Part shown: one piece after another, positions 5,258 to 62,726 of the stretch | How positions within the stretch are numbered: position 1 is the stretch's first letter | Layout of the letters: every line of letters starts with the position of its first letter | Virus record (IMG/VR): IMGVR_UViG_3300027969_000039 | Span: 239,058-303,057 of that record | Strand: one strand, 5' to 3' | Length of the DNA: 64,000 nt | The notes under the pieces: model-generated | Told to the model about the DNA's origin: nothing | Seen by the model: the letters and a program-made list of their open reading frames with translations, nothing else | Databases searched by the model: none | Made by a program: the position numbers and the translations under genes

Positions 5258-14287
<9,030 letters not shown>

Positions 14288-16594: not shown

Positions 16595-19500
16595 ATGGCA
16601 GTTTTAACGATACAACCGGTAGCAATTGACTCAGCGAATAACTTCACATTCGCTAGTACAACCAGCAACTCAGTAACCGTCTCGGGAAACGCTACAGGTA
16701 ATGTTAATATCGCCACTGTAACTGCAAACTTAGGTTTCCGTGGTGTTTTTGCTACATATACAGATAATTCTGCTGCATCATCAGCGACAGTAGCTAATGC
16801 AGCTATACACGCATTTGCTGCACCAAACTTAGCAGCGGCGAACACAGGTGTCACGTTCACAAACGCAGCTACTTTCTATATCGCAGGTGGACCAGTAGCT
16901 AATACAAATGCTACGATAACTAACTCATATTCATTATTAGCAGGGGGAAACGCACGTTTCACTGGTAATATCATAGGTACACTAGCGAATGGCAATAGTA
17001 ATATCTATATCGCTACCGCAAACGGCAATGTGACTGTAGCTGCTGCTGGTAACACAACACTAACAATCACTGGTACTGGGGTGAATGTAGCTGGTACAGG
17101 AAATTTTAGTGCTAACGTTGCTGCTGCATATTTCATAGGTAATGGTAGTCAATTGACAGGACTTCCAAGTAGTAGCGGTGCAACAGGCGCTACTGGATAT
17201 ACAGGTAGTACTGGAGCAACGGGTGCTACAGGAGCAACAGGCAATTCAGGTAGCACAGGTGCAACTGGTTTAGGTAGTACAGGTGCAACTGGTGCAACTG
17301 GTAATCAAGGTAGCACAGGAGCAACTGGCTTAGGTAGTACTGGCGCTACTGGTAATGATGGAGCCACAGGAGCAACTGGCTTAGGTAGTACTGGTGCAAC
17401 TGGTGCAACTGGTGCAACAGGTAATCAAGGTAGCACAGGAGCAACTGGATTAGGTAGTACAGGTGCCACAGGTGCAACTGGTTTAGGCAGTACGGGTGCT
17501 ACAGGAGCCACTGGTTTAGGTGCTACGGGCGCCACTGGTGCAACTGGCTTTAATGGCGCAACCGGAGCAACAGGACCAGTTGCAGGCAGTAATACTCAAA
17601 TTGTATTCAATGACGCCGGCACTGCGAATGGTAGTGCTAATTTAACATTCAATAAAACAACTAATGTATTAGCAGTAGTTGGTAATGTAACCGCAAGTAA
17701 TTTTGTAGGTGCATTAGCGAATGGGAATAGCAACGTATACATAGCAACAGCTAATGGAAACGTAACTATAGCAGCAGTAGGCAACACAACATTGACTGTT
17801 ACTGGTACTGGCGCTAATATCACTGGTACAGCAAACATCTCTGGTAATTTAACTATAGGATCAGCCACTGGTGGTAACTTAACTGGTGCTAATGTTATTA
17901 GTGCTAACACAGGTAATTTTACTGCTAATGTAACAGCAGCATACTTTATTGGCAATGGTAGTCAATTGACTGGACTTACTAGTTTTACAGGTTCAACTGG
18001 TGCTACTGGTGCTACTGGATATAATGGTGCCACTGGCGCAACTGGTTTAGGTAGTACAGGTGCTACTGGTGCAACTGGTTTAGGTAGTACAGGTGCTACA
18101 GGTGCAACTGGTTTAGGTAGTACAGGTGCAACAGGTGCAGCAGGCAATGACGGTGCAACTGGTGCAACTGGTCCGATTGCCGGAAGTAATACTCAAGTTG
18201 TATTCAATGACGCAGGTGTTGCGAATGGTAGTGCTAATCTAACTTTTAACAAAACAACCAACGTGTTAGCAGTAACTGGTAATGTTAGTGCTACTTACTA
18301 TATTGGCAATGGTAGTCAATTAACTGGTATTGCAACTGGTACTCCTGCTAGCATCAGCAATGGAAATAGTAATGTAAACATTCCTGCTGCGAACGGTAAC
18401 ATTACTATGAGTGCTGTGGGTAATAGTAACGTAGTAATTATCACTGGTACCGGCATGAATGTTGCAGGAACTGCAAATATCTCTGGTAATTTAACAATAG
18501 GTTCAGCTACAGGTGGTAATTTAACTGGTGCTAATGTAATATTTGCAAATGTGTTTACCTCGAATGTAACAACAGGTACTGCTCCGTTTATTGTTAGTTC
18601 AAATACAGTAGTAGCAAACTTGAATGCTGATTTACTTGATGGATATACTACAGCAACAGCAAATACGGCAAATACAGTTGCAGTAAGAGATGCAAGTGGC
18701 AATTTAAGTGCTAATTATTTTATCGGTAATGGTAGTCAATTGACAGGTGTAGGTAGTGCCGGTTCATTGTCAAATGGTAATAGTAATGTAAATATTCCAG
18801 TGGCCAATGGTAATATAACTATTAGTGCTGTTGGTAACGCTAATGTAGTGATAGTAACTGGTACTGGTATGAATGTTGCAGGTACAACAAATATCTCTGG
18901 TAATTTAACAATAGGTTCAGCTACAGGTGGTAATTTAACTGGTGCAAATGTATTAAGTGCAAATACAGGTAATTTCAGTGCTAATGTAACAGCATCATAT
19001 TTCTTAGGTAATGGTAGTCAATTGACCGGTCTTTCAAGTAGCAGCGGCGCCACTGGTGCTACAGGTGCAGGTGCGACTGGTGCAACTGGAGCTACTGGTT
19101 TAGGTAGTACTGGTGCGACAGGTGCAACTGGTGTAGGTAGTACTGGTGCAACTGGTGTAGGTAGTACTGGTGCAACTGGTGTAGGTAGTACTGGTGCAAT
19201 TGGAGCGACGGGCGCTACTGGATTAGGTAGCACGGGTGCTACAGGTGCAGCAGGCAATGACGGTGCAACTGGTGCAACTGGCTTAGGTAGTACTGGTGCA
19301 ACTGGTGCAACTGGTGCAACAGGCAATTTAGGTAGCACAGGTGCAACTGGCGCCCAAGGTGCAACAGGTGCAACTGGTTTAGGTAGTACAGGTGCAACTG
19401 GTGCCCAAGGTGCAACAGGTGATCAAGGTGCAACAGGTGCAACTGGTTTAGGTAGTACAGGTGCAACTGGTGCCCAAGGTGCAACAGGTACAGCAGGTAA

Positions 19501-22500
19501 TGACGGTGCAACTGGTGCTACTGGTTTAGGTAGTACAGGTGCAACAGGTGCTCAGGGTGCTACTGGTTTAGGTAGCACTGGTGCAACAGGTGCAGCGGGT
19601 AATAACGGAGCAACTGGCGCTACAGGTCCGATTGCAGGATCTAATACACAAATCATATTCAATGATGCAGGTACAGCAAATGGTAGTGCTAACTTAACAT
19701 TTGATAAGACATCTAGCGTATTAACAATCACTGGTAACATAATAACTGGTGCAGGCACTGGCGGCAATATCACCGGAGCTAATGTTTTAAGTGCTAATTC
19801 TGGTAACTTTGCTACTACTTTGAATGTTGTAGGTAATGCTAATGTAGGTAATTTAGGATTTGGTAGTGGTATAATCACTGGTACAGGTAATGTAACTGCC
19901 GGATACTTCTTGGGAAATGGTAGTCAATTGACCGGTATATCTACAAGTAGTAATACTATATTTAATGGCAATAGCAATGTAAGCATCCCGTCAGCAAATG
20001 GTAACATCAACTTAAGTGCTGTAGGCAACGCTAATGTTGTAATAGTTACTGGTACTGGTATGAATGTTGCAGGTACAGCGAATATCACTGGTAACATCAT
20101 AACGGGTGCAGGCACAGGTGGAAACATCAGTGGGGCTAATGTTATAAGTGCAAACACAGGTAATTTTACTGCTAATGTAACCGCATCATATTTCTTAGGT
20201 AATGGTAGTCAATTGACCGGTATTACTAGCAGCGGGGGTGCTACAGGTGCTACAGGTGCAGGTGCAACGGGTGCTACTGGTTTAGGTAGTACAGGTGCAA
20301 CTGGTGCTACTGGATATGATGGTGCTACTGGTGCAACAGGATTAGGTAGTACAGGTGCAACGGGTGCTACTGGTTTAGGTAGTACAGGTGCAACTGGTGC
20401 TACTGGATATGATGGTGCTACTGGCGCTACAGGTCCGATTGCAGGATCTAATACACAAATCATATTCAATGATGCAGGTGTTGCTAATGGTAGTGCTAAC
20501 TTAACATTCGATAAAACTTCCAGTTTATTAACAGTTACTGGAAATATAGTAACGGGTGCAGGCACAGGTGGAAACATCAGTGGGGCTAATGTTATAAGTG
20601 CAAACACAGGTAATTTTACTGCTAACGTAACAGCAGCGTACTTCTTAGGCAATGGTAGTCAATTGACTGGACTAACTAGTTTTTCAGGCGCTACAGGCGC
20701 TACTGGATTAGGTAGTACTGGCGCGACGGGAGCAGTAGGTAGTACAGGTGCTACTGGTTTAGGTAGTACAGGCGCAACAGGTGCAACAGGCAATGACGGA
20801 GCAACTGGTGCTACTGGTATAGGTAGTACAGGTGCTACTGGCGCTACTGGTTATAACGGAGCGACTGGTGCAACAGGACCAGTCGCTGGTAGTAACACAC
20901 AAATTATATTCAATGACGCTAGCACTGCAAATGGTAGTGCTAATCTAACATTTGATAAAACAACCAATCAACTTACAGTAACCGGAAATCTTCAAGTAAC
21001 AAATACCTCAAATTTAGGTTCTGTGAGTAATGTAAAAATTACAGGTGGTTCTAGCACATATGTACTAAGTACAGACGGTGCCGGTAACTTAAGTTGGGTA
21101 GCACAATCAGGGGGAGGCGGCGGTGGTGCAAGTATCAGTAATGGAAACAGTAATGTAAATATAGCTACTGCAAACGGCAATATCACTATGAGTGCTACTG
21201 GTGTTTCAAATGTAATGGTAGTAAGTAACACCGGCGTAGTTACATCTGCCTTAACAGTGGGCGGCGGTGTCGGCGGTAATGTTACAGGTGCTAATGTGAT
21301 TTCAGCTAATACAGGTACCTTTGGTGCAAATGTAACAGCAGCATTCTTCATAGGCAATGGTAGTCAGTTGACCGGTATCAGTGTAAGTGCTGGCACATTT
21401 GTGTCAAATGGCAATAGTAATGTAAATATTCCAGCAGCAAACGGGAACGTTAATATATCAGCAGTAGGTAATGCTAATATATTGGTAGTGACTGGAACTG
21501 GCGCTAATATCACAGGTACAGCTAACATTGCCGGTAATGCAAACGTAGGTAATTTAGGTACAGCAGGACAGATTATATCTACTGTCGCAACAGGTACTGC
21601 TCCATTAATAGTTACTTCGACCACAGTTGTAGCAAACTTAAATGCTAACGCATTGCAAGGTAATACACCTACATCTGCAAACACAGCAAATACAATTGCT
21701 CAGAGAGATGCTAACGGTAACTTGAGTGCTAACTTCTTCACAGGTAACGGTGCATTCTTAACTGGTCTTACTTTTACTACATTCAGTAATGGTAACAGTA
21801 ATATAAATATACCAGCAGCAAACGGAAACGTAACTGTAGCTGCGGTTGGTAACACAACATTGACAATCACTGGTACTGGCGTGAACGTAGCAGGTACTGG
21901 AAACTTCAGTGGTAATGTAAGTGTCACTGGTAATTTAAGTGCAGCTAACCTATTGGGGTCTCACGCAAATGGTAACAGTAATGTAAACATACCAGCAGCA
22001 AACGGAAACGTTAATATATCATCAGCAGGTAATGCTAACATATTAGTAGTAACTGGAACTGGCGCTAATATCAATGGCACATTGAACACTGGTAGTGGGA
22101 ATATTAATACTACGGGTAACGTAAGTGGAGCATTCTTCATAGGCAATGGTAGTCTATTGACTGGCATTTTTCCAACAACATCAAGTATAGCTAATGGAAA
22201 TAGTAATGTAAACGTAGTAGCAAATTCAAATGTCACTATCTCGGTAACAAGTGTACCAAACGTTGTAGTTGTAACATCAACTGGCGTTAACGTAGCCGGC
22301 ACATTGAATACAGGCAGTGGTAATATTAATACAACCGGTAATGTCAGTGGAGCATTCTTCATAGGTAATGGTAGTCAATTGACTGGTCTTACTATCAGTG
22401 CTGGCACTTCTTTAATAAATGGTAATAGCAATGTGACAGTCATAGCAAATGGTAACATTACTATGAGTGCCACTGGTACTGCTAATGTATTAGTTGTTTC

Positions 22501-24418
22501 TAATACCGGTGCAAACGTCACTGGAAACGGATTTTATTCTAATACAGTTACTGCACCCTTCTTTGCAGGTAATGGTTCACTATTAACTGGTATAGCTACC
22601 AGTGGTGCATTGATTAGTAATGGTAGCAGTAATGTAAATATACCAGTTGCTAACGGAAATGTTAATATATCATCAGCAGGTAATGCAAACGTATTAATAG
22701 TTACTGACATTGGTGTTAATGTACCGGGTAATTTAACAGCTGGTAATTTAATTGGAATTTTTGCAAATGGAAATACTGATTTTAGTATTCCAGTAGCAAA
22801 TGGTAATATACTTACTGATGTTGGTGGTGTAGCAAATGTTATGATAATAGCTAATACTGGTGTTCTAGTACAAGCTGCAAACACTTCATTTATTGCTAAT
22901 ACAATTACTGCTAACGGCGTTGCGTACGGTAATATGAATTTTAGTACCACTATACCAGTCGCTAATAACGTTGGTATAAGAGCAACTCAAGCTACATATA
23001 CAGATACTATTAGTTTGGCTTCAACTTCTATCACACTAGCAGGCGCACATGGATTTGATATACCAACTATGGCAGCGTCAAATCTTCTTGTTACGTATGG
23101 TAACGCAGCAACGATGGCAATATTAGGTGCACCAACTGCTGGCAGTAATGTAACAATAACTAATAGATATGCATTGTGGGTTGGTGGTGCATCAACACCG
23201 GCTAACTCATACTTTAACGGTAACGTTACTATTTCTGCTAACTTGACAGTTGGTAACTTAATTGGTGGTATTGCGAATGGTAATAGTAACATAAATATCC
23301 CATCAGCAAACGGAAATGTTAATATATCAGTAACTGGTACAGCTAACGTATTAGTAATATCTAACACGGGTGCTAATATATCTGGTACTGCCAACATTAC
23401 TGGTAACTTAAATGCAGCTAACTTAACTGGTATATATGCAAATGGCAATAGTAACGTAAGTATCCCATCAGCTGCCGGCAATATTACTCTATCCGTCGGT
23501 GGTACTAGTAATGTAGCAGTATTTTCTAATACCGGTGCTAATATATCTGGTACTGCAAACATCACTGGTAATCTTACAGTTCAAGGCACAAACGTAACTA
23601 TTGGTTCTGGTACCGGTGGCAACATATCTGGTGCAAATGCTATAACTTCTAATAGTTATACAGCAAACGGTGCAGTTACTGGTAATGCTAACGTGAGTAC
23701 AGTCACCGGTGTTATGGGTATTAGAAGTATATCTTCAACTTATACGGACAATTCAGCAGCGGCATCCGGTACATTGTCAGTTGCAGCAGCACATGCGATT
23801 GCTACCCCAACTTATGCAGCAGCAAATACTACAGTAACAGCAACCAATGCGGCTACTTTCTATATTCAAGCACAGCCAACTGCTGGTACGAATATGACAA
23901 TAACTAACCCATATGCACTATATGTTGCAGCAGGTAACAGCTTCTTTGGTGGTAACATCATTGGTACATTAGCAAACGGAAATAGTAATATAAATATTCC
24001 TGCAGCTAATGGAAATATAAACTTCAGTTCAGCAGGTAATGCCAATGTAGTAGTTATTACTGGAACAGGGTTACGTGTAAACGGTGCAGGTGGATTAGGA
24101 TATAACAGCACTATTGGTGCTAATACTCAAACAGCTAATCGTAATAATTCGGTTACTATCAGTAACATTACTGGTGCTATTACATTGTTCAGTACAATTA
24201 CTACAGCAAATACAACCAATGTGTTTACTGTTACTAATACTACAGTAGCAGCAACTGATGTAATTATATTGAGCCAACGATCTGGTACTGTTGGTAGCTA
24301 TATACTCAATGTTGCTAATGTAGCAGCAGGATCGTTTGCTGTACAAATTTATAATGTAGTATCGCCTGCTGTTGCCGAAGCACCAATCATTAACTTTGCA
24401 GTAATCAAGACAGCATAA
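16595..24418 (+). CDS. Giant Asn-rich repeat fibre protein with interrupted G-A-T collagen-like tracts
   Basis: 2607 aa; many [26 protein letters not shown] and [21 protein letters not shown] repeats; AAGGA RBS and upstream TAAATA. Confidence 0.8.
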
Positions 24419-24767: not shown

Positions 24768-25676
24768 ATGATTTTATTTGGAATGACCCTTACCGGCGGA
24801 TTTACTATATCTAAACCGGACTTGAGTTCTGTTGAATATCTAGTAGTCGCCGGCGGCGGCTCTGGTGGTGGTGGACCAGGTGGCGGCGGTGGAGGTGCAG
24901 GAGGCGTATTATCTAGTAGTAGTTTTTCTATATCATTAGGCACTCCATATACGGTTACAGTTGGTGGTGGTGGCGCAGGTGTTAGTTATGGCGCATATGG
25001 TAACTACGGAAACGCCAGTGTGTTTAGTTCTGTCACTGCCACAGCGGGGGGACGAGGGGCAGTTGGTGGTATAGGCACAAACGTAGGTGGCAACGGTGGT
25101 TCTGGGGGCGGTGGCGGTTCTGGCCCAAACAGTGGTGTGTTAGGAAGCGCAGGCGGTACCGGGGTATCAGGTCCACCTATTCAAGGATATGCCGGCGGCT
25201 ACGGTACACAGGTCAGTGGAGCACATCAACAAGGTGGCGGCGGTGGTGGTGGAACAAGCATTGGTGGAAATTCATCTACGTCTGGATCCGGTCCGGCAGG
25301 TGACGGCGGTACAGCCGTGTATAGTACTATCTCTGGTGCAAATGTTTCATATGCCGGTGGAGGCGGTGGCGGTGGACACTATACTGGCACGACACGCGGT
25401 GGTTATGGTGGCGGAACAAATCCTGCAACAGGCGGCGGAGGTAATGGTGCAAATCAAGATACCAATGGAACCGCAGGCAGTGCTAACACCGGTGGCGGTG
25501 GAGGTGGTGGTGGTAATGGACCAACATCAGGTCAAGCAGGCGGCTCTGGTGTTGTTATTGTCCGTTATCCAGATAGTTTTGCAGCAGCATCAAGTACTAC
25601 AGGTAGCCCAACTATCACTGTTACCGGCGGATACAGAATATACATCTGGACTAGTTCAGGTTCAATAACTTTCTAA
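24768..25676 (+). CDS. Glycine-rich domain protein (putative adhesin), paralogue 1
   Basis: VEYLVVAGGG...poly-Gly...GGSGVVIVRYPDS...WTSSGSITF. Confidence 0.75.
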   Translation: MILFGMTLTGGFTISKPDLSSVEYLVVAGGGSGGGGPGGGGGGAGGVLSSSSFSISLGTPYTVTVGGGGAGVSYGAYGNYGNASVFSSVTATAGGRGAVGGIGTNVGGNGGSGGGGGSGPNSGVLGSAGGTGVSGPPIQGYAGGYGTQVSGAHQQGGGGGGGTSIGGNSSTSGSGPAGDGGTAVYSTISGANVSYAGGGGGGGHYTGTTRGGYGGGTNPATGGGGNGANQDTNGTAGSANTGGGGGGGGNGPTSGQAGGSGVVIVRYPDSFAAASSTTGSPTITVTGGYRIYIWTSSGSITF

Positions 25677-25683
25677 AGCAAAT

Positions 25684-26670
25684 ATGATCATAGGTAATTT
25701 ATCTGTTGCAGCTGGGGGTGTTGATTTTTCATTCCCGACCATTTCATCTATCGACTACTTAGCAGTAGGTGGCGGCGGTGGCGGTGGTGTGGGTACTGCT
25801 TGGGATACTGACTCGGGAGGCGGTGGTGGCGGTGGTGGAGGATTCATTGAAAGAACAAATATTTCAATCACCCCTGCTACACTTTATACTATTACCGTAG
25901 GCGCAGGGGGCGCCGGTGGATTAGTAACTAATGGCAGCGGTATTGGCGCTACAGTAGCAGCAGCTACCAACGGGAACACATCATCTATAACAACTTTAGT
26001 TAATGCACGTGGAGGTGGAAGTGGCGGATATTATACTCCAACAAATGGCCGTACTGATGGCGACGTCGGCGGGTCTGGGGGCGGGGCAGGTTCAGGTGGT
26101 GGTGGTCAAGATCAATTTGGAGGAGCTGGTAATGTACCGGCAGCAACTCCACCTCAAGGTTATGCTGGTGGAAGAAATTACACAAGTGATGTACAAGGGG
26201 CTGCCGGTGGAGGCGGAGGCGCTGGGGCTGCCGGGGCAAACGGAACCGCAGCAAGGGGAGGAAATGGTGGTATTGGGGCAATCACTACATTTATTAGTAC
26301 TACATTAGCTACTAGTTTAAGTGTAGGGCAAGTAAGCGGGGGTTCTGTGTATTTTGCAGGCGGTGGAGGCGGATCTACAGGATCCACAATTAATCAAGGA
26401 CTTGGTGGTCTTGGTGGAGGTGGTAACGCAAGATATAATGCTAATGTAGTATCAAGTCTACCTAACACAGGTGGAGGTGGAGGTGGATTAGGATTTGGTG
26501 CAAATAACATGACCGGGGGAACTGGTGGTTCGGGTATTGTAATCATACGAGTCACAGATTCAGTTTACAACAACTCATCAAACATCATTGTTACCGGCAC
26601 TGTATCGAATACGGTGATAGATGGGTATAAATTATTCATTTTTACCGGTAGCGGAACAATAACTTTTTAA
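25684..26670 (+). CDS. Glycine-rich domain protein (putative adhesin), paralogue 2
   Basis: IDYLAVGGGGGGG...GGSGIVIIR...FTGSGTITF. Confidence 0.75.
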   Translation: MIIGNLSVAAGGVDFSFPTISSIDYLAVGGGGGGGVGTAWDTDSGGGGGGGGGFIERTNISITPATLYTITVGAGGAGGLVTNGSGIGATVAAATNGNTSSITTLVNARGGGSGGYYTPTNGRTDGDVGGSGGGAGSGGGGQDQFGGAGNVPAATPPQGYAGGRNYTSDVQGAAGGGGGAGAAGANGTAARGGNGGIGAITTFISTTLATSLSVGQVSGGSVYFAGGGGGSTGSTINQGLGGLGGGGNARYNANVVSSLPNTGGGGGGLGFGANNMTGGTGGSGIVIIRVTDSVYNNSSNIIVTGTVSNTVIDGYKLFIFTGSGTITF

Positions 26671-26680
26671 GGATATATAA

Positions 26681-27604
26681 ATGTTAATAACTTCAGGAGT
26701 GACTATTGGATTAGGTGTAACGATTATACCCCCTATCCCTACACCATCAACAGTAGAATATCTAGTAGTTGCCGGTGGAGGTGGTGGCGGTACCATTGGT
26801 GGTGGCGGCGGTGGCGGCTACTTAGCCGCAAGTGGCTTTGCAGTTCCTACAGGTTCAGCAATTACAGTAACTGTAGGTGCTGGCGGCGCGGTACCAGTGG
26901 GAAGTTACCGTATCGGTGGCAACGGTGCTAATTCTTCTATAACTGGAACAGCAGTATCCGTTGTTTCCGTTGGTGGGGGAGGCGGCGGCGCTTACTACTA
27001 TAACTATGGGGAGATGGACGGGGCTAATGGTGGCTCAGGTGGCGGCGCTGGCGTTACATATGGCGGTGATAGTCATGCAAATGGAAATCCGGGTACAGGT
27101 GTTGTTGGGCAAGGTAATAACGGAGGAACAGTTTCAGCTACTGCTGGGGGTGGTGCAGGCGGCGGCGGCGGAGCAGGTGCGGTTGGTGGTGCCGGCTCAG
27201 GTAGTACAGGTGGTGCCGGCGGTATCGGTGTCTTAAATGCTATCACTGGTACTAGTTATTATTGGGCAGGCGGTGGCGGTGGCGGTTGGTCGCCAGCTGG
27301 TGCAGGCGGTAACGGTGGCGGACAAGGCGGCGCTGGGCCAGGATCGTCTGGGGCTATGGGGAGCGGACTTAATTCTGCTACCATATATGGTGCAGGACAA
27401 AATACAGGTGGTGGCGGTGGTGGGAATTACCCATTTTCCGCCGGGCCTGCTGGGTTTACTAATACAGGTGGTTCTGGAATCGTTGTTATTCGTTATCCAG
27501 ATAGTTATCTAGCAGCAACAAGCACTACAGGTAGCCCAACTATTACAACTACCGGTGGATATAGAATATATACTTGGACTAGTTCAGGATCGATAACTTT
27601 TTAA
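26681..27604 (+). CDS. Glycine-rich domain protein (putative adhesin), paralogue 3
   Basis: VEYLVVAGGGGGG...GGSGIVVIRYPDS...WTSSGSITF. Confidence 0.75.
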   Translation: MLITSGVTIGLGVTIIPPIPTPSTVEYLVVAGGGGGGTIGGGGGGGYLAASGFAVPTGSAITVTVGAGGAVPVGSYRIGGNGANSSITGTAVSVVSVGGGGGGAYYYNYGEMDGANGGSGGGAGVTYGGDSHANGNPGTGVVGQGNNGGTVSATAGGGAGGGGGAGAVGGAGSGSTGGAGGIGVLNAITGTSYYWAGGGGGGWSPAGAGGNGGGQGGAGPGSSGAMGSGLNSATIYGAGQNTGGGGGGNYPFSAGPAGFTNTGGSGIVVIRYPDSYLAATSTTGSPTITTTGGYRIYTWTSSGSITF

Positions 27605-28460: not shown

Positions 28461-30776
28461 ATGATTAATGTTTTAAAACGCAATGGCAAAAAAGAGCCAT
28501 TAATGTTAGAGAAATGGCAAGCACAAGTAGCAAAAGTATGTACAGGAATCGCTGATGTAAGCCCGAGTATGGTTGAGATCAAAAGTCAACTACACTTTTA
28601 CGATGGAATCACTACAAGTCAGATAGATAGTATAACATTACGAGCAATCGTTGATTTGATTGACGTAGAAAGTAACCCTGAAGTTGGACATACGAATTAT
28701 CAGTATGTAGCAGGAAAGCAGCGTATGAGTATGCTGCGTAAGGATGTATATGGTCAATATGAGGTTCCGCACCTCTACGATATTGTGAAAAAGAATGTAG
28801 CTACAGGATTGTATACAAGTGAATTACTAGAATGGTATACTGAGGAAGATTGGAACAAAATGAATGATATTATAGATCATTCTAAAGATGAGACTTATAG
28901 TTATGCCGCTATTGAGCAACTTATCGAAAAGTATCTAGTAAAAAATCGCAGCACTAAGGAAATATATGAAACTCCGCAAATTCGCTACATGGTTGCAGCA
29001 GCTACCGTCTTCCATAGTGAAGAACCAAACACAGCAAGACTCAGATACATCAAAGAATACTACAATGCTGCTAGTGATGGTCTTTTTACATTGGCTACCC
29101 CTGTGCTTGCTGGCCTGGGAACTCCAACTAAGCAATTCAGTAGTTGTGTGCTTATTCGCAGTGACGATGATCTGGACAGTATCTTTGCTTCGGGAGAGAT
29201 GATGGCCAAGTATGCTAGCAAACGTGCTGGCATTGGTCTAGAAATTGGAAGATTGCGTCCGTTAGGCAGTCCCATCCGTGGTGGAGAGATCATGCACACC
29301 GGCATGATACCTTTTCTAAAGAAGTGGTTCGGTGATCTACGTTCATGTAGTCAAGGAGGTATCCGTAATGCTAGTGCTACTGTTTTTTATCCTATTTGGC
29401 ATCATCAGTTTGATGATCTTATTGTTCTCAAGAACAATCAAGGCACAGAAGAAACCCGTGTGCGACACATGGACTATGGTGTGGTTCTATCCGCATTTTT
29501 CTGGAAGAGATTCAAGAACAAAGAGAACATAACATTCTTTGACCCTAACGAAGTACCTGACTTGTATGAAGCATTTTATAAAGATACTAATCTGTTTGAA
29601 GAACTTTACTGCAAATATGAAAAGCAGAAAACCCTGCGTAAGAAAACGATGGCTGCGGAGGAAGTTTTCAAGAGTGGTATTCTCAAGGAACGAACAGACA
29701 CTGGACGTATATATCTAGTGTTCATTGACAATGTGATGAAGCAGGGTCCATTTGATCCCGAGTATCATACAATTTACCAGAGTAACTTATGCTGTGAAAT
29801 ACTTTTACCCACTAGATCCTTTAAGCGTCTTGATGATCCTGATGGTCGCATTGCCCTTTGCACTTTGGGCTCAATCAACTGGGGAGCCTTCAGAAATCCG
29901 GAAGACATGCGTCGGGCTTGCCGTATTCTACATAGGAGTCTTAACAATATATTGGATTACCAGGACTTCTTAAGTATTCAATCTAAACTTAGTAACGATG
30001 AGATACGCCCATTAGGCATTGGTGTAACTAATTTAGCATACTGGCATGCTAAACGCAGTCTTAAGTACGGCGAGAAAGATGCATTGGCTGAAGTCAAAAT
30101 TTGGGCAGAACATCTAGCATTCTATCTAACAGAAGCAAGTGTAGAACTTGCTAAAGAAAGAGGTAAGTGTGAAGGTAGCGACAAGACAAGATATGGTCAA
30201 GGAACATTTCCGTGGGAACTAAGAGCCAAAGGTGTTAATCAACTAACTGACTTTAACCCAGAATTAGATTGGGAAACACTACGCACAAATATGAAAGAAC
30301 ACGGTGTACGTAATGCTACGCAAATGGCTATCGCTCCTGTAGAATCAAGTAGTGTAGTTATTAACAGTACAAATGGTATTGAAATGCCAATGAGTTTGAT
30401 ATCTGTAAAAGAAAGTAAAGCAGGTAGCTTCACTCAAGTAGTTCCAGAATATCACAAATTAAAGAACAAGTATCAGTTGATGTGGGAGCAGAAAGACTGT
30501 GATGGTTACTTAAAGACCGCAGCAGTACTAGCAGCATACATCGACCAGAGCATAAGTACTAACACATTTTATAATCCTGCTCATTTTGAGGGTCGTAAAG
30601 TTCCAACTACATTGATTGCAAAGAATCTGATGCAAGCACATATGTGGGGACTTAAGACTTTCTATTATAGCTTGATTAACAAACAGGGTAGTAAAGCACC
30701 CGATGAGATAGCCCCAACAATGTTGGAACCAATCGACTTTGATAATGAAGAAGATTGTATTGCATGTAAATTATAA
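28461..30776 (+). CDS. nrdA: Ribonucleotide reductase class Ia alpha subunit
   Basis: N-terminal ATP cone (V.KRNGKKEP), QFSSCVL, SNLCCEI, ALCTLGSIN, TFYY, C-terminal CIAC. Confidence 0.97.
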   Translation: MINVLKRNGKKEPLMLEKWQAQVAKVCTGIADVSPSMVEIKSQLHFYDGITTSQIDSITLRAIVDLIDVESNPEVGHTNYQYVAGKQRMSMLRKDVYGQYEVPHLYDIVKKNVATGLYTSELLEWYTEEDWNKMNDIIDHSKDETYSYAAIEQLIEKYLVKNRSTKEIYETPQIRYMVAAATVFHSEEPNTARLRYIKEYYNAASDGLFTLATPVLAGLGTPTKQFSSCVLIRSDDDLDSIFASGEMMAKYASKRAGIGLEIGRLRPLGSPIRGGEIMHTGMIPFLKKWFGDLRSCSQGGIRNASATVFYPIWHHQFDDLIVLKNNQGTEETRVRHMDYGVVLSAFFWKRFKNKENITFFDPNEVPDLYEAFYKDTNLFEELYCKYEKQKTLRKKTMAAEEVFKSGILKERTDTGRIYLVFIDNVMKQGPFDPEYHTIYQSNLCCEILLPTRSFKRLDDPDGRIALCTLGSINWGAFRNPEDMRRACRILHRSLNNILDYQDFLSIQSKLSNDEIRPLGIGVTNLAYWHAKRSLKYGEKDALAEVKIWAEHLAFYLTEASVELAKERGKCEGSDKTRYGQGTFPWELRAKGVNQLTDFNPELDWETLRTNMKEHGVRNATQMAIAPVESSSVVINSTNGIEMPMSLISVKESKAGSFTQVVPEYHKLKNKYQLMWEQKDCDGYLKTAAVLAAYIDQSISTNTFYNPAHFEGRKVPTTLIAKNLMQAHMWGLKTFYYSLINKQGSKAPDEIAPTMLEPIDFDNEEDCIACKL

Positions 30777-30785: not shown

Positions 30786-31700
30786 ATGAAAAAATTATTA
30801 GTTATATTAACTGTATTAGTATTAGCAGCTTGTAGTAAAACAACAACTGCTCCTACAGCAACCGTAACAACATTCACCCCTTCTTTTGTAGTAGACTACA
30901 ATGGATGTGGAACTGATCCAGTAATATCAGGTAACTCTGTTACATTCGGTTCAGGAACAAATTGTCAAGCAGGTAGACTTGTATCACAACAAGGATATGT
31001 GAATATCACACAAGTCAAAGCAACGATTGATCTGTCAAAACTATCACAGAACTATGTTAACGCTAGTTTCTACATGGTATCAAACCCAGTACAACCTAGT
31101 GTTCAACCAAAAGGCACTAACTACTGTGATGCAGGTGGTAGCCAGAACCAATGGAACTGCCAAGAGATTGATATCATAGAAACAAATGGTAACAAAATCA
31201 CACAATCTACATTACATCTAGGTACAGGTGGTTCTAGTGCTCCACAACGATATGAGTATTCATTCGCATCTACAGCGAATAACAGTTGTTTCAACTATTC
31301 ATCAATGACTAGTTCACCTACTGCTACTAACGGATTACACAGTATGGTCAATGTCATTGACATGAGCAAACCATTTGATATGGTGACTGATTTCACATAC
31401 GGAACAACTCCTACAATGAAAGTAACATATTCACAGAATGGTAATTTTGTGATAGTATATGATAGTAGTATTGGTACAGGTGCAGAAGGTAGTGGTAGTG
31501 TAGATATGACTTCATTGATAACTAGCATGAAGAATGGTTACTGGTTGAATCTATCATTCTGGCAAGGCTTTAGCCCGACTGGCCCCGGTAGTGCTCCGTG
31601 GTGGAACAACAGTTGTTCATGGGGCGCATTGTGCAATAATACAAGTGGATACTGGAGTATCAGCAACATACAAGTAACTGCTGATAGCGTAATAAAATGA
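30786..31700 (+). CDS. Lipoprotein with clan-B glycoside hydrolase (GH7/GH16-like) domain
   Basis: Lipobox LAAC after MKK and a hydrophobic stretch; Thr/Pro linker; YCDA...CQEIDIIETN (E-x-D-x-x-E). Confidence 0.65.
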   Translation: MKKLLVILTVLVLAACSKTTTAPTATVTTFTPSFVVDYNGCGTDPVISGNSVTFGSGTNCQAGRLVSQQGYVNITQVKATIDLSKLSQNYVNASFYMVSNPVQPSVQPKGTNYCDAGGSQNQWNCQEIDIIETNGNKITQSTLHLGTGGSSAPQRYEYSFASTANNSCFNYSSMTSSPTATNGLHSMVNVIDMSKPFDMVTDFTYGTTPTMKVTYSQNGNFVIVYDSSIGTGAEGSGSVDMTSLITSMKNGYWLNLSFWQGFSPTGPGSAPWWNNSCSWGALCNNTSGYWSISNIQVTADSVIK

Positions 31701-32800
31701 GTCAAGCACAATACGATTTACACACAAAGACAGATTACTTAAATCGTAAGATGTTTCTAGATCCGTTGGGTCCAGTTACTATCCAACGTTTTGAAGAAGT
31801 TAAATATAAGAAGATCGCAGACTTTGATAGTACTGCTAGGGGATTCTTTTGGCAACCAGAAGAAATCAGTTTAACTAAAGATGCCAATGACTTCAAAGAA
31901 GCCAGTGATGCAGTTAAACATATCTTCACTAGTAACTTACTACGACAGACAGCATTGGATAGTTTGCAAGGACGTGGACCAACACAAGTGTTTACCCCTG
32001 TATGTAGCATCCCTGAACTAGAAGCATTGATGTACAACTGGGGCTTCTTTGAGACAAATATTCACAGCAAGAGTTATAGCCATATCATTCGCAATATCTA
32101 TAATGTGCCAAAAGATATATTCAATACTATACACGATACACAAGAGATTGTGGATATGGCTGCAAGTATTGGCAAGTACTATGACAAACTACACGAGTTA
32201 AACTGTTTCAAAGAAATCAGTCCAAAGACAGTAAGTGAAGAAACTCATATTAAAGCAATATGGTTAGCATTGAACGCAAGCTATGCATTAGAAGCATTTA
32301 GATTTATGGTATCATTTGCTACTAGTTTAGCAATGGTAGAGAACAAAATCTTTATTGGTAATGGTAATATTATTGGATTGATTTTACAAGATGAATTACT
32401 ACACAAAGCATGGACTGCATACATCATCAATCAAGTAGTCAAAGAAGATGAAAGATTTGCTAAAGCAAAACAAGAGTGTGAAGGTGAAGTATATCAATTG
32501 TACTTAGATGTAATCCGTGAAGAAAAACAATGGGCAGACTATTTGTTCAACAAAGGACCTGTAATTGGATTGAATGCTAATGTATTGAAAGACTTTGTTG
32601 ATTATACAGCAGTAGGTGCATTGAAAGAGATCGGTATTAAATATCAAGGTAATGCGCCAAAGAGTACGCCTATACCTTGGTTCAACAAACATAGTGATAC
32701 AAGCAAGAAGCAGACCGCACTACAAGAAAACGAATCAACAAATTATGTAATCGGTATTATGAGTGAATCACTTGATTACGACCAATTGCCAAATTTATAA
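31697..32800 (+). CDS. nrdB: Ribonucleotide reductase class Ia beta subunit
   Basis: FFWQPEEI, LDSLQGR, ETNIHSKSY (radical Tyr), LEAFRF, DELLH. Confidence 0.96.
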   Translation: MSQAQYDLHTKTDYLNRKMFLDPLGPVTIQRFEEVKYKKIADFDSTARGFFWQPEEISLTKDANDFKEASDAVKHIFTSNLLRQTALDSLQGRGPTQVFTPVCSIPELEALMYNWGFFETNIHSKSYSHIIRNIYNVPKDIFNTIHDTQEIVDMAASIGKYYDKLHELNCFKEISPKTVSEETHIKAIWLALNASYALEAFRFMVSFATSLAMVENKIFIGNGNIIGLILQDELLHKAWTAYIINQVVKEDERFAKAKQECEGEVYQLYLDVIREEKQWADYLFNKGPVIGLNANVLKDFVDYTAVGALKEIGIKYQGNAPKSTPIPWFNKHSDTSKKQTALQENESTNYVIGIMSESLDYDQLPNL

Positions 32801-32811: not shown

Positions 32812-33042
32812 ATGAAAGCCATAGTATGGAGTAAGTACGACTGCCCTTATTGCGACCAAGCAAAAGCCTTACTAAAAAGTAAAGGGATACAGTTTGAAGA
32901 AAAGAAAATTGGTGATGGATACACCAAAGAAGATTTATTAGAAGCAGTACCAACTGCCAGATCAGTTCCGCAGATTTTCCTAGACGGAGAACTTGTGGGT
33001 GGGTTCACAGAACTCAGAAAAAAATTAACAGAAAGCGTATAA
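32812..33042 (+). CDS. Glutaredoxin
   Basis: CPYC active site, SVPQIF, GGF. Confidence 0.92.
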   Translation: MKAIVWSKYDCPYCDQAKALLKSKGIQFEEKKIGDGYTKEDLLEAVPTARSVPQIFLDGELVGGFTELRKKLTESV

Positions 33043-35756: not shown

Positions 35757-35789
35757 TTGGTTATTAATCAAAACTGTAGTATACTACAG
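35757..35789 (+). promoter_or_regulatory. Weak sigma70-like promoter overlapped by a 16-bp perfect palindrome (CTGT-N8-ACAG)
   Basis: TTGGTT(35757)-17 nt-TATACT(35780); CTGTAGTATACTACAG at 35774-35789. Confidence 0.4.
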
Positions 35790-35801
35790 AAAAGGAAAAT
35801 T

Positions 35802-36344
35802 ATGTTTTTATCATTAAAAAATAAAATAGTATTACTGTCCATGATGTTTTTATCATTCATGGTTATTCCTTTGCCAACACAATCATTGTACAATTTACCA
35901 GAGATTAGTATACCTACTCTGAAGAAAATTGACATGAAACAACTTGCGTGTATGGCAAAAAATATATATTATGAAGCGGGCGCTGAGATAATGCCTGGTC
36001 AAGCCGCTGTCGCCAGAGTAGTAATGAATCGTGTTAATCATGGGTTCGCCGAGACTCCATGCAAAGTAATCTATCAAAAGACTACAATCAATGAAAATGT
36101 TGTATGTCAGTTTAGCTGGGTTTGCGAGGGCAAAGGTGATCCTAACCCTGCAAGCGCAAGATACAAGCAAGCAGAAATGATTGCGTACCAAGTAATGACA
36201 GGCATGTATAAAGATGTTGTTCCAAAGACAACATTGTTCTTTCATTCGATACATGTTGATCCATCGTGGCCATACAAGCAAGTAGCAAAGATAGGTAATC
36301 ACATTTTCTATAGCAAGCAAAGAGTCAAAAAAACTGATGATTGA
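35802..36344 (+). CDS. Cell wall hydrolase, SleB/Hydrolase_2 family, with N-terminal membrane anchor
   Basis: C.AKNIYYEA..E...GQ.AVA.VVMNRV, CQFSW, IGNHIFY; AAGGA RBS supports the ATG at 35802. Confidence 0.88.
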   Translation: MFLSLKNKIVLLSMMFLSFMVIPLPTQSLYNLPEISIPTLKKIDMKQLACMAKNIYYEAGAEIMPGQAAVARVVMNRVNHGFAETPCKVIYQKTTINENVVCQFSWVCEGKGDPNPASARYKQAEMIAYQVMTGMYKDVVPKTTLFFHSIHVDPSWPYKQVAKIGNHIFYSKQRVKKTDD

Positions 36345-41266: not shown

Positions 41267-42092
41267 AATACTAGATGCTAATGCAGTAGAGGTCTATGAT
41301 GTTGACTATAAGAATTTATCTACGGATGAAGTTAATCAGATAGCAGAGTTGTATTTCAAACATCTTGTTGTGATAGCCAGGGATCAACACTTATCTCCAG
41401 AAGATATGATCAAGGTAGCAAATCAGTTTGGCGTTCCTGAATATTTTGATCCAGAAACACAACGACAAAGAGCCGCTGAGAATGTCAATGGAGTACAAAG
41501 AGTTTGCAAAGGATTCAATGACGATGGTACTCCTAAAGGATTGTTTGGGCATGATGAAGAATTGAATTGGCATGCTAATCGACCATCAGCAGAGAACGAA
41601 CGCAAACCTATCATATTCCTAGTAGCAGCACATGATACTAAAGGATCAAAGATAAGCTGGGCCAATATGGCATTAGCCTACGATGATCTAGACCAATCGA
41701 CTAAAGATTTCTTAGAAGATAAGAAAGGTATATATGGATTTGAGCCGGACACATATACTAAGTCATTCAACATATGGAAACCACATCGCAATAAAGATGG
41801 ACAGAATTTTATCAGAACGAATCCAGTAGGGATAAAAGGAATGTTTTTTCCTTATTATCAATTTTTTGGATTTAAAGATGTTGATGAGAAAACTAATCAA
41901 TATTATAAAGAACTTCTATTCAATCATTCTTATCAAGACAAATATTGCTATCACCATGAGTATGAAGATGGCGATGTTATATTTGGAGATCAGTGGTTAA
42001 CTGTTCACAAACGATGGGCTTGTGAATTAGGTAATAGAATGATCTATAGAGTTTCTATGGATTGGTCTAAATGTCTAACTATCTCATTGTAG
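41229..42092 (+). CDS. TauD/TfdA-family dioxygenase (start may be GTG at 41256)
   Basis: LVVIARDQ.LS, WHAN, G...WANM..AYDDL, Y.H....GDVI..DQ..TVHKR. Confidence 0.8.
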   Translation: MLFAERKLFVKYKILDANAVEVYDVDYKNLSTDEVNQIAELYFKHLVVIARDQHLSPEDMIKVANQFGVPEYFDPETQRQRAAENVNGVQRVCKGFNDDGTPKGLFGHDEELNWHANRPSAENERKPIIFLVAAHDTKGSKISWANMALAYDDLDQSTKDFLEDKKGIYGFEPDTYTKSFNIWKPHRNKDGQNFIRTNPVGIKGMFFPYYQFFGFKDVDEKTNQYYKELLFNHSYQDKYCYHHEYEDGDVIFGDQWLTVHKRWACELGNRMIYRVSMDWSKCLTISL

Positions 42093-42799
42093 TAGGTATT
42101 TAAAATAGTATTACAGTACTCAATTTTTTCTATTCTGAATGAGTCACCTATCATACTTTGTAGAAAATCGATAATATCTACAAATCTTCTATCAACTAGC
42201 ATAGTACATAAATCTATTGAATTTTGTGTAGGTTTGGTATTAAATTTATTTAACACCAATTTATTACTGTTTTCTTCTGTCCCGGGGTAACATGCGACAT
42301 TTCTATCAAATTGATATTTCAACCCTCTTTCAGTCGTTGGAATAATAGATAGTTGTTTTATATTATATCCTAAACTAATCATTTCATCGTACGGTATAAT
42401 ATTGCTCCAGGTATGCATACCATATATCAATCTCATATCTTTTATATCAACATCATTATTACTATAAAACTTAATATCATTTGTTTGATGTTTCCATTTT
42501 TGCTGTTGAGCAATCAAATGAGTTGCTAAATTTTCAAAAAAATAAACATAATCAATAGTAGATGAAGGGTCACACTTGTCTAAAAACCAATTCACTATTC
42601 TTTTTGGAATTAATATATCGTAATCAATTTCTCTTGAAGCTGCATTCTGATTTATTGTTGTAGCGGATAATATTCTTGAATTCTCATAGTGTAATTTACT
42701 ATCTAGTTCAGCCCATAATCTTAATAACAGCTGGCCAGATGAACCAGGCATATAATCTATTAAAATTAATTCATTGTTTTCTAGTATTGAAAATTTCAT
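42044..42799 (-). CDS. Hypothetical protein with N-terminal Y.PGS.G loop (sulfotransferase-like?)
   Basis: IDYMPGSSGQLLLRLW; last gene of the minus-strand run. Confidence 0.45.
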   Translation of the reverse strand: MKFSILENNELILIDYMPGSSGQLLLRLWAELDSKLHYENSRILSATTINQNAASREIDYDILIPKRIVNWFLDKCDPSSTIDYVYFFENLATHLIAQQQKWKHQTNDIKFYSNNDVDIKDMRLIYGMHTWSNIIPYDEMISLGYNIKQLSIIPTTERGLKYQFDRNVACYPGTEENSNKLVLNKFNTKPTQNSIDLCTMLVDRRFVDIIDFLQSMIGDSFRIEKIEYCNTILNTYYNEIVRHLDQSIETL

Positions 42800-42800
42800 G

Positions 42801-43370
42801 TCACACTAAATCAAGTAGAATATTATTTAGATTAGGATCTATTTTTGACACCCAAGTGTTTATTGAATAAATTTCTAGTTCTCTTTTATCTTCACCTCTT
42901 TCAATAGAATATTTAAAATCAAACACTTTTATTTTACCATTCTTATGTGTCATATTGGCCATTGCATTATTAATTTTGTAAATATTATTTTCTTTGAAGA
43001 ACTTAAAAATTTCAACTATTTGTTCTGATGCGTCAGGTATAATGTGATTTAATCTAGTACTTTCATGCTCGTACCAAGTCAACAAATCTGGATTTGTCCA
43101 CTCTTGTATTAAATAAAAACCCGGCTCGTCTTTTAATTCACCATGCTCGTATAATTCAATTACCATATCAGATTTTAATTTAGTTGACCAATGTATTTCA
43201 GTATTAAAAAGTGAGGTTATTCTTTCCATAGATGTCTCAAACGGTTTTTTGCCGGTTATAGTAATACTATCTGGTTTATAAAATTTTTTACAAAGACCTG
43301 CATCCTTGTCTACCCAAACTTCAGCGGCCGACCCGCGGGACCCATTATCTTTTTGAAATAATTTAAACAT
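42801..43370 (-). CDS. Atypical kinase-fold protein
   Basis: RGSAAEVW, CKKFY, E-helix, LIQEW, DLL, N..N, KVFDFK. Confidence 0.55.
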   Translation of the reverse strand: MFKLFQKDNGSRGSAAEVWVDKDAGLCKKFYKPDSITITGKKPFETSMERITSLFNTEIHWSTKLKSDMVIELYEHGELKDEPGFYLIQEWTNPDLLTWYEHESTRLNHIIPDASEQIVEIFKFFKENNIYKINNAMANMTHKNGKIKVFDFKYSIERGEDKRELEIYSINTWVSKIDPNLNNILLDLV

Positions 43371-43379
43371 TTAATCTAA

Positions 43380-43961: not shown

Positions 43962-43981
43962 TTGATATTATATTAATAATG

Positions 43982-48471: not shown

Positions 48472-48491
48472 ATATTCTTATTTGTTATTGA

Positions 48492-48510
48492 TATTTATAC
48501 AGTATAAATA
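48492..48510. promoter_or_regulatory. Back-to-back T4-type late promoters (TATAAATA on both strands)
   Basis: Perfect inverted repeat TATTTATAC-A-GTATAAATA between divergent genes. Confidence 0.7.
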
Positions 48511-48527
48511 CGCTGGGAACAATACTT

Positions 48528-50687: not shown

Positions 50688-50690
50688 AAT

Positions 50691-56456: not shown

Positions 56457-56461
56457 GCTAT

Positions 56462-58395: not shown

Positions 58396-58397
58396 GA

Positions 58398-62487: not shown

Positions 62488-62494
62488 AATTTAT

Positions 62495-62573: not shown

Positions 62574-62579
62574 ATTTTA

Positions 62580-62653: not shown

Positions 62654-62658
62654 GTTTT

Positions 62659-62717: not shown

Positions 62718-62726
62718 TTTTATTAT

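Follow-up and report, generated by a model that had tools for sequence, protein, structure and literature searches.

A single gene, located on the plus strand, is inserted between nrdA and nrdB in a freshwater jumbo phage (IMG/VR record IMGVR_UViG_3300027969_000039), of which a window, i.e. the whole stretch of DNA analysed here, of 64,000 nucleotides was studied (Table 1). The gene starts 9 nt after the nrdA stop codon and its own TGA overlaps the nrdB start. The encoded protein, P0001, begins with MKKLLVILTVLVLAAC, which features an n-region, an h-region and a lipobox and is followed by SKTTTAPTATVTT. A domain of roughly 275 residues, predicted to adopt a jelly-roll fold, makes up the remainder.

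Table 1. Features of the nrdA–nrdB region, numbered from the first nucleotide of the window
Position	Strand	Feature	Observations
28461..30776	+	nrdA, class Ia ribonucleotide reductase, large subunit	Upstream neighbour in the same operon; Pfam PF02867 (5e-113), PF00317, PF03477
30777..30780	+	Shine-Dalgarno site AGGA	5 nt before the ATG, directly follows the nrdA stop; no + strand terminator-like site between nrdA, the following gene and nrdB
30786..31700	+	Gene for the predicted GH7-like glycanase P0001	304 aa plus stop; 105 homologues; dN/dS 0.06-0.15 against close relatives
30786..30833	+	Predicted lipoprotein signal peptide, residues 1-16	MKK, hydrophobic core, lipobox L-A-A-C with Cys16; 57 of 91 full-length homologues have a strict lipobox at the same place, most others have FGC/SGC variants or a signal-peptidase-I type AxA site ending just before the conserved (T)YTPxF
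30834..30866	+	Thr/Pro/Ala-rich tether, residues 17-27 (SKTTTAPTATV)	Low model confidence, pLDDT below 50 for residues 1-24; absent in the homologues with an AxA signal
31122..31130	+	Y113-C114-D115	Invariant; aligns with the GH7 YCDAQ motif (8POF, 5W0A)
31158..31181	+	C125-x-E127-I-D129-I-I-E132	Predicted nucleophile, helper Asp and acid/base of a retaining clan GH-B hydrolase; all four invariant; aligned to C-N-E-L-D-I-W-E of RsSymEG1
31215..31217	+	H144	Invariant; aligns with the His that follows the catalytic strand in GH7
31536..31565	+	G251-Y-W-L-N-L-S-F-W259-Q	Aligns with the GH7 G(M/H)V(L/I)V.S(L/I)W strand; W253 and W259 at least 90% conserved
31697..32800	+	nrdB, small subunit	Start overlaps the stop of the GH7-like gene (ATGA); Pfam PF00268 (1e-41)
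32812..33042	+	Glutaredoxin	Pfam PF00462; in many related phages the GH7-like gene sits between nrdB and this gene

In a preliminary description based on the sequence alone, the protein had been proposed to be a compact prokaryotic or viral relative of the family GH7 cellulases, and motifs of the GH7 consensus had been recognized in it in the right order. All of these motifs are indeed present, and alignment with solved GH7 chains pairs them as had been guessed. The consensus of a profile built from 35 family members matches vdLskl..nyvnasfYmv with VDMSALPCS-INAALYTV, nYCDaGg...CrEiDflEtNgN with GYCDAQG...CNELDIWEANSA, tQttlH with TQLAVH, idmskpfdmvaef with VDTSKPFTVVTQF and GywlelslW with GHVIVVSLW. 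In a search of all PDB sequences this profile hits the GH7 endoglucanase RsSymEG1 (8POF) with an E value of 2.6e-12 over 180 residues, followed by the GH7 structure 5W0A, while no GH16 chain is found at E up to 10. Profile-profile comparison (hhalign) with GH7-like proteins from protists resulted in a probability of 99.8% (E 3.3e-30), and phmmer with P0001 alone reaches three proteins that pass the Pfam cut-off for GH7 at library-wide E values of 2e-5 to 2e-4. The resemblance is thus far beyond chance. Still, it is remote: the Pfam GH7 model PF00840 detects neither P0001 (at E up to 0.1 and, in a second search, up to 10) nor any of the 35 aligned homologues, and a six-frame search of the phage genome with this model also gave no hit, so that we are dealing with a distant GH7-like lineage and not with a textbook member of the family. 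The Pfam GH16 model PF00722 does not detect the protein either.

Structural comparisons point in the same direction. The AF2 model of P0001 (pLDDT 89.8) matches GH7 first with every structural aligner applied. The top 47 Foldseek hits in the PDB are all GH7. With VIA-align, 8POF scored a Z of 18.6 (238 residues aligned, 24% identity), 6SU8 a Z of 17.6 and 2RFW a Z of 16.4, with about 240 residues aligned, whereas GH16 chains scored Z 12-15 over about 190-215 residues, the best of them reaching Z 14.8 (188 residues aligned, 14% identity). Among the AFDB clusters, the named hits ranking above the first GH16 (rank 19) are GH7-type cellulases, cellobiohydrolases or glucanases. A shape search of the ESM Atlas yielded TM-scores of 0.66-0.67 for GH7 against 0.52-0.54 for GH16, and GH7 was also the first named family in a feature-based search of the same resource. 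TM-scores to full-size GH7 enzymes amount to only 0.5-0.67 because about a third of a canonical GH7 is missing, and identity over the structure is 19-24%.

The residues expected to form the catalytic apparatus of a GH7 enzyme, i.e. E127, D129, E132 and H144, are invariant in 35 homologues down to 43% identity, and the same is true for D115, N134 and the C114/C125 pair that frames the catalytic strand, although the Gln of the GH7 YCD(A/S)Q motif is replaced by Gly. The low dN/dS values show that the gene is under purifying selection. An export signal was found in every full-length family member examined, but Pfam LPAM_1 hits are only weak, and the assignment as an envelope-located lipoprotein is read from the sequence only. 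Two bacterial-type homologues carry dockerin repeats, a mark of secreted carbohydrate-active proteins. Gene spacing, the Shine-Dalgarno site and the lack of a terminator-like site place the gene in the nrd operon. Transcription is not shown, as two metatranscriptome runs contain only a few short contigs over the region, with two 151-nt contigs from one RNA library lying within the gene (31344-31435 and 31467-31615), and DNA can be present in such libraries.

The family is largely viral. We found at least 98 loci in IMG/VR, and 59 of the 80 that were kept reside in the nrd module; the position between nrdA and nrdB is one of several occupied by the cassette in related phages. In contrast, the family occurs in only 5 of 185,579 prokaryotic species genomes, and it is furthermore present on one giant-virus contig and in protists. 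The three nearest ESM Atlas clusters consist of 100% viruses. The Halieaceae copies are nested among viral sequences in our tree, and in three of the four Halieaceae genome loci, as well as in a Tara contig, they have a GC content 5-9 points lower than their flanks. A further search with the protist alignment returned only four proteins and no canonical GH7s; the tree therefore lacks fungal and animal GH7 and GH16 outgroups, and its root on the Pfam-positive protist GH7s is assumed, not inferred. Single-sequence searches of Pfam, the PDB (phmmer), 50,697 GenBank phage records (tblastn) and PHROGs gave nothing, which bears on novelty and not on homology, and INPHARED and BFVD also hold no counterpart. 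As Pfam, PHROGs, INPHARED and BFVD all miss this family, virome annotations currently label it as hypothetical. In the literature searched, which did not cover the primary paper on RsSymEG1, we found no report of a GH7 from a phage or a bacterium. As to the host, which cannot be assigned, the T4-type capsid protein is nearest to those of jumbo phages of Proteobacteria such as PA5oct and Phosso, and nrdA likewise shows similarity to jumbo phages of Proteobacteria.

RsSymEG1, a 'smaller GH7 endoglucanase' from a symbiotic protist of the termite Reticulitermes speratus, is the closest solved structure. It shares with P0001 the short YCDA-(about 8-9 residues)-C-x-E-x-D-x-x-E-x-N arrangement, the following His, the DxSKPF and SLW strands and a compact, open-cleft form without the tunnel loops of cellobiohydrolases. 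RsSymEG1 is, however, eukaryotic, comprises 321 residues and is filed under GH7 by its depositors, while the phage domain has about 275 residues, carries a bacterial lipoprotein signal and tether and escapes the Pfam GH7 model. Canonical GH7 endoglucanases and cellobiohydrolases (Trichoderma reesei EG I, 1EG1, and Cel7A, Humicola insolens Cel7B, Daphnia and Limnoria Cel7) share the clan GH-B jelly roll and the catalytic E-x-D-x-x-E plus His and are the top Foldseek hits (E 1e-10 to 1e-7), but have 370-440 residues with long loops, many disulfides and often a CBM1, are exclusively eukaryotic in the literature consulted (PMC7571853), and give target-normalized TM-scores of only 0.34-0.43. Divergent GH7-like proteins of marine protists (the haptophyte Scyphosphaera, the dinoflagellate Biecheleria, Pirum, a labyrinthulomycete, and dinoflagellate wall cellulases) are hit directly by phmmer with the phage protein (E 3.5e-16 to 8e-4) and have a similar compact size. 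They are equipped with eukaryotic signal peptides or C-terminal extensions and branch outside the clade that holds all the phage and bacterial sequences, with the exception of the dinoflagellate pair, which falls within it. Dinoflagellate GH7 enzymes remodel the organism's own cell wall (PMC10438907, PMC7571853) and thus set a precedent for a wall-directed rather than a nutritional role. GH16 laminarinases, lichenases and related enzymes, including those of phages and giant viruses, share clan and fold, have a similar size of 200-280 residues and are often bacterial lipoproteins or secreted, but lack the YCD/C pair and the GH7 context of the His. Known phage depolymerases that remove a host surface glycan are mostly virion tail-spike beta-helix proteins, whereas P0001 has a signal peptide and lipobox, so that it would be delivered by the infected cell rather than by the virion; the functional parallel is an inference only.

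Taken together, our observations support the core of the preliminary description, and we are fairly confident that the gene encodes a small, miniaturized and distant relative of GH7, most likely a retaining endo-beta-glycanase of clan GH-B. That it is a catalytically active, exported GH7-like glycanase appears very probable, although no activity, substrate, lipidation or localization has been measured. We infer that the protein is made together with the nucleotide metabolism enzymes of the phage, exported by Sec, lipidated on Cys16 and held to a membrane of the Gram-negative host envelope by the short Thr/Pro tether. Because it lacks long tunnel loops, it would cut a beta-linked, most likely beta-1,4 or mixed-linkage gluco-configured polysaccharide in an endo fashion with retention. 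Only tentatively, we suggest that it trims a glycan of the infected cell's own envelope or surrounding matrix (capsule, EPS or cellulose-like polymer, or a receptor glycan), which would help progeny escape and would stop adsorption to doomed cells. Superinfection exclusion or matrix degradation, as originally put forward, remains a guess. In Proteobacteria, a lipoprotein without a surface-export route faces the periplasm, where a cellulose- or EPS-type substrate is not obviously available, and the neighboring nucleotide metabolism genes say nothing about glycans.

We prefer this role to feeding of the host because the family is overwhelmingly viral and nearly absent from bacteria. It is conceivable that the enzyme acts as the product of an auxiliary metabolic gene and digests environmental beta-glucans or cellulose, for example from lake phytoplankton, such that the infected cell gains sugar for energy and nucleotide synthesis. 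This would fit the export signal, the apparent co-transcription with nrdA, nrdB and the glutaredoxin gene, the cellulase and beta-glucanase activities of GH7 enzymes (PMC7571853) and the origin from freshwater metagenomes rich in algal glycans. We nevertheless consider it unlikely, because typical auxiliary metabolic genes mirror common host genes, the cassette also resides in non-metabolic positions, such as between a holin-like gene and dnaJ or among radical SAM or glycosyltransferase genes, and a single endo-glucanase with no companion beta-glucosidase or transporter seen nearby gives little usable sugar within one infection cycle. Moreover, a periplasm-facing lipoprotein could not reach polymeric substrates. 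An accessory role in lysis, in which peptidoglycan glycan strands, periplasmic glucans or a nascent exopolysaccharide are attacked from the periplasmic side together with holin and endolysin, is also unlikely. The gene directly follows a GTA_holin_3TM-like gene in one phage lineage, and in the window an endolysin-like SleB/Hydrolase_2 gene with an N-terminal hydrophobic segment is located 4 kb downstream on the same strand. However, the same holin-like gene and dnaJ are adjacent without the GH7-like gene in the window's own genome, so the former adjacency looks like an insertion site rather than a functional module. In addition, no clan GH-B enzyme appears to be known to cleave peptidoglycan, and expression early or in mid-infection is expected for a gene in the nrd operon.

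That the protein is really a divergent GH16 of the laminarinase or lichenase type, with convergent GH7-like motifs, is very improbable. GH16 enzymes share the fold and an ExDxxE-type motif, are the common bacterial and phage members of clan GH-B, and viral GH16s are the best BFVD hits, but GH7 wins in all five structural or feature rankings with about 40-50 more aligned residues and higher identity, and the YCD...C-x-E spacing, the His and the DxSKPF and SxW motifs are GH7 signatures. There is similarly little room for a non-catalytic, lectin-like lipoprotein that masks or binds a surface glycan. Concanavalin-like lectins share the fold at Z 10-11.5, yet the catalytic residues as well as D115 and N134 are also kept in the protist GH7-like set, and lectin derivatives of glycosidases appear usually to lose such residues. 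A more far-reaching possibility, which we regard as doubtful at present, is that the phage proteins, together with the giant-virus and marine-protist copies, form a virus-centred lineage of 'mini-GH7' enzymes and are the first GH7-type hydrolases of the prokaryotic world. They may then mark either the route by which GH7 moved between eukaryotes and bacteria via virus-mediated, cross-domain transfer or a compact ancestral form from which the large eukaryotic cellulases grew, and the lipid-anchored phage version would be a new class of cell-delivered, not virion-borne, phage glycan-remodelling enzyme.

GH7 is the workhorse cellulase family of fungi and, in the literature consulted, has so far been described only from eukaryotes (fungi, protists, crustaceans), with prokaryotes using GH48 and other families instead (PMC7571853). 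A conserved, selected GH7-like enzyme with an intact catalytic site, present in about a hundred phage contigs, would extend the family to phages, a few bacteria and giant viruses. At about 275 residues, it would give the smallest natural scaffold of this fold, useful for enzyme engineering and for understanding which loops are dispensable, and it would open the question of cross-domain gene flow between protists, giant viruses and phages. For phage biology, it points to an unrecognized kind of accessory gene, a glycanase exported and tethered by the infected cell.

The gene for the GH7-like protein encompasses 304 codons and starts 9 nt after the stop codon of nrdA. An AGGA sequence is situated 5 nt upstream of its ATG and its TGA stop codon overlaps the ATG of nrdB. 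The neighboring genes were identified on the basis of Pfam models Ribonuc_red_lgC (nrdA, 5e-113) and Ribonuc_red_sm (nrdB, 1e-41). No terminator-like site on the + strand separates the three genes, so the gene is part of the nrd operon. Downstream on the same strand reside genes for glutaredoxin, a 97-aa protein, a PAAR protein, a 713-aa protein and an endolysin-like SleB/Hydrolase_2 protein. The product of the gene begins with MKKLLVILTVLVLAAC, a textbook lipoprotein signal with Cys16, which is followed by a Thr/Pro/Ala-rich stretch, while the folded domain starts near residue 28. The motifs that had been listed in the preliminary description as reminiscent of GH7 cellulases are all present and in the order described there.

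Coordinates of the GH7-like gene, its neighbors and further notable features (window positions unless stated otherwise)
Position	Strand	Feature
5258..14287 and 16595..24418	+	Two giant ORFs of 3009 and 2607 aa in a higher-GC stretch (0.43-0.50), flanked by tail-fibre-like genes
14341..15237		Tail-fibre-like gene, hits PHROG 4492 (tail fiber)
24768..27604	+	Three tandem paralogous Gly-rich proteins (302, 328 and 307 aa; long GGGGG runs, shared C-terminal GIV(V/I)IRY and G(S/Y).I.F ends); the first two hit PHROG 2295 and, for one of them, a tail-fibre-assembly family
28461..30776		nrdA
30786..31700	+	GH7-like gene
31697..32800		nrdB
35757..36344	+	Endolysin-like SleB/Hydrolase_2 protein (PHROG 938, lysis) with an N-terminal hydrophobic segment, possibly a signal-anchored or secreted endolysin
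42044..61751	-	Run of about 20 co-directional low-GC genes: eight pass the Pfam Radical_SAM cut-off (one of them also has a SPASM domain), two more hit it weakly; also two QueC/PP-loop-like genes, an Asp/Arg beta-hydroxylase-like gene and a weak GT2 hit
62412..63952	+	Array of 11 tRNA genes (Gln, Gly, Ile x2, Arg, Thr, Met, Ala, Pro, His, Leu) at the end of the record
G000:C1:110291-111359 (same phage genome, outside the window)		GTA_holin_3TM-like gene next to a phage dnaJ
L093:7001-8236 (ENA marine contig, 268 kb)		411-aa distant homologue of the GH7-like protein

The window forms the last 64 kb of a linear IMG/VR virus record of 303,057 bp with a GC content of 37%, which is 86% complete as estimated by CheckV. 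The genome encodes a T4-type major capsid protein (Pfam Gp23, 7.8e-99) and the nearest isolates by that protein are jumbo myoviruses of Proteobacteria, i.e., Sinorhizobium phage Phosso (72%), Vibrio phage 2.275.O (70%) and Pseudomonas PA5oct-like phages (68%). NrdA is closest to its counterparts from Xanthomonas, Ralstonia and Stenotrophomonas phages (55-61%). The DNA occurs in freshwater, river and lake metagenomes and the host is probably Gram-negative. A remarkable feature of the window is the extraordinary density, for a phage, of radical SAM paralogues on the minus strand, which could represent a peptide- or nucleotide-modification pathway.

In a set of 5.8 billion proteins, 105 homologues were found at E up to 1e-3 (38-93% identity), none of which is named, and an exhaustive phmmer search over 1.84 billion representatives yielded only 59 clusters. 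The family is thus real but narrow. Pairwise dN/dS values against eight close relatives lie between 0.06 and 0.15, which indicates strong purifying selection. Two metatranscriptome libraries contain short contigs matching the region, two of them inside the gene, although this does not prove transcription.

Searches of Pfam, the PDB and PHROGs with the single sequence gave no result. This changed when an alignment of 35 sequences was used. Its profile hits exactly two solved sequences and both belong to GH7: RsSymEG1 (8POF) at E 2.6e-12 over 180 residues and Trichoderma harzianum EG I (5W0A) at 0.41, with the motifs listed in the preliminary description being paired in the alignment. The weakest phmmer hits of the phage protein itself (E 2e-5 to 2e-4) pass the GH7 cut-off of Pfam at 45-63 bits. 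One of these is from the haptophyte Scyphosphaera, and others in this twilight zone originate from a dinoflagellate, Pirum and a labyrinthulomycete. When the 35-sequence alignment was compared with six of these protist proteins by hhalign, a probability of 99.8% and an E value of 3.3e-30 over 223 columns were obtained.

The AF2 model is confident (pLDDT 89.8, pTM 0.87) and only the signal and the tether are disordered. In a Foldseek search of the PDB the top 47 hits are all GH7 (best E 1.4e-10) and GH16 first appears at rank 48. VIA-align against 48,161 chains resulted in Z scores of 18.6 for 8POF, 17.6 for 6SU8 and 16.4 for 2RFW (238-244 residues aligned, 19-24% identity), as compared to a best Z score of 14.8 for GH16 (185-215 residues aligned, 8-16% identity). 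Among AFDB clusters, the named hits above rank 19, where GH16 first occurs, are GH7-type 'cellulase', 'cellobiosidase' or 'glucanase'. The ESM Atlas shape search gave TM scores of 0.66-0.67 for GH7 and 0.52-0.54 for GH16, and in the Atlas feature search GH7 is the first named family with a score of 0.86 and 195 of 256 features, while GH16 scored 0.79. The three Atlas clusters nearest to the query, ahead of GH7, are unnamed and 100% viral. Neither the Pfam GH7 nor the Pfam GH16 model detects the protein, even in a search restricted to the one genome. A best match to an ordinary GH16 or a lectin, which would have refuted the GH7 reading put forward in the preliminary description, is therefore not what was found, and the protein is a remote, miniaturised GH7 relative.

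In the 35-sequence alignment, in which identity to the query goes down to 43%, the invariant residues include Y113, C114, D115, C125, E127, D129, E132, N134, N136, Q140 and H144, whereas W253 and W259 are at least 90% conserved. E127-x-D129-x-x-E132 aligns with the E-L-D-I-W-E of RsSymEG1 and H144 aligns with the His that follows there. If the mechanism generally accepted for retaining hydrolases of clan GH-B applies, these residues would be the nucleophile, the helper Asp, the acid/base and the His that tunes them. The short YCDA-(8-9 residues)-C-x-E spacing is shared with the 'smaller GH7' RsSymEG1 and not with the large fungal enzymes. The domain of about 275 residues lacks roughly a third of a canonical GH7. 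We infer that the missing part corresponds to the tunnel loops, which would give an open cleft and endo action.

Of 91 full-length homologues, 57 feature a strict lipobox at the same place and several more have FGC, SGC or WSC variants. Most of the rest carry a signal-peptidase-I signal ending AxA immediately before the conserved (T)YTPxFxxDY. In the viral and bacterial members examined the family is therefore an exported one, and the Thr/Pro segment is a tether specific to the lipoprotein forms. Position +2 is Ser or Thr and an acidic surface-export signal of the Bacteroidota type is not present. Two bacterial-type members carry dockerin repeats.

Among 185,579 prokaryotes, each represented by one genome per species, only five carry the family, namely four Halieaceae MAGs and one Planctomycetes MAG. 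The Halieaceae copy lies between uvrB and purK. In IMG/VR, 98 stretches encode the protein, of which 80 were kept. In 31 of these 80 loci the gene resides between nrdA and nrdB as in the window, sometimes with extra inserts, in 28 it is found between nrdB and the glutaredoxin gene, and in 21 it is located elsewhere. The first two groups are phages related to that of the window, with nrdA 82-100% identical. The interval between nrdA and nrdB is a hot spot in this phage group: relatives (loci L049-L057, L060 and L066 and the 60.7-kb contig encoding homologue P0056) carry extra inserts of 0.8-1.6 kb at this position, and one has SHMT and an FAD-dependent oxidoreductase between nrdA and nrdB. The loci with the gene elsewhere include one among radical SAM genes and one beside UvdE and an epimerase and glycosyltransferase. 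In a further one, the related contig L035, the gene is inserted exactly between a GTA_holin_3TM-like gene and dnaJ, followed by clpB, while in the window's own genome the same holin-like gene and dnaJ are adjacent without it. The gene therefore behaves as a small movable cassette. In most phage pairs compared (loci L017-L030), synonymous divergence of the GH7-like gene is clearly lower than that of the flanking nrdA and nrdB (for example locus L018: dS 0.88 against 3.2 and 2.5), suggesting that the cassette was exchanged among these phages more recently than its neighbors diverged. The distant homologue P0164 on the 268-kb marine contig occurs together with two RNA polymerase Rpb2 genes, a MutS, an RNA_pol_N and an AAA ATPase, a giant-virus-like (Nucleocytoviricota-like) context. 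Its N-terminal 130 residues are Gly/Asn-rich and have no signal peptide.

An 80-row tree was calculated (quick IQ-TREE, LG+C20) and rooted by assumption on the Pfam-positive protist GH7s. The other protist sequences are basal and a starred clade (96) holds a dinoflagellate pair, the giant-virus copy and all prokaryote and phage sequences. As the root is not inferred, canonical GH7 and GH16 are missing and several branches are long, the tree leaves the direction of transfer between eukaryotes and viruses open. The Halieaceae copies (100*) are nested among viral ones. In three of the four Halieaceae genome loci, and also in Tara contig L001, the gene has 5-9 points lower GC than its flanks, which is compatible with acquisition from a lower-GC donor such as a phage.

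Taken together, GH7-type homology, an intact catalytic set, selection, an export signal, membership in the nrd operon and a mostly viral distribution are apparent for the protein. We infer Sec export, lipidation by Lgt/LspA, tethering in the envelope of a Gram-negative host and retaining endo-cleavage of a beta-linked glycan. As to the biological role, we tentatively prefer trimming of the infected cell's own surface or matrix glycan, that is, receptor destruction, release of progeny or superinfection avoidance, over nutrient acquisition or a function as lysis accessory. The family is nearly absent from bacteria, unlike classical auxiliary metabolic genes, its relatives in dinoflagellates act on the organism's own wall (PMC10438907; PMC7571853), and wall-degrading enzymes appear to be common in giant viruses. 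The remaining alternatives are a GH16 enzyme or a lectin.

In the review literature consulted, GH7 is placed in fungi and other eukaryotes, and prokaryotes are stated to use other families for this function (PMC7571853; see also PMC5111886). We found no paper on a phage or bacterial GH7, and there is no counterpart in PHROGs, INPHARED or BFVD. While fold and chemistry are known, what is new is the carrier, i.e., phages, as well as the size of the enzyme, its lipoprotein delivery and its near-absence from cellular prokaryotes.
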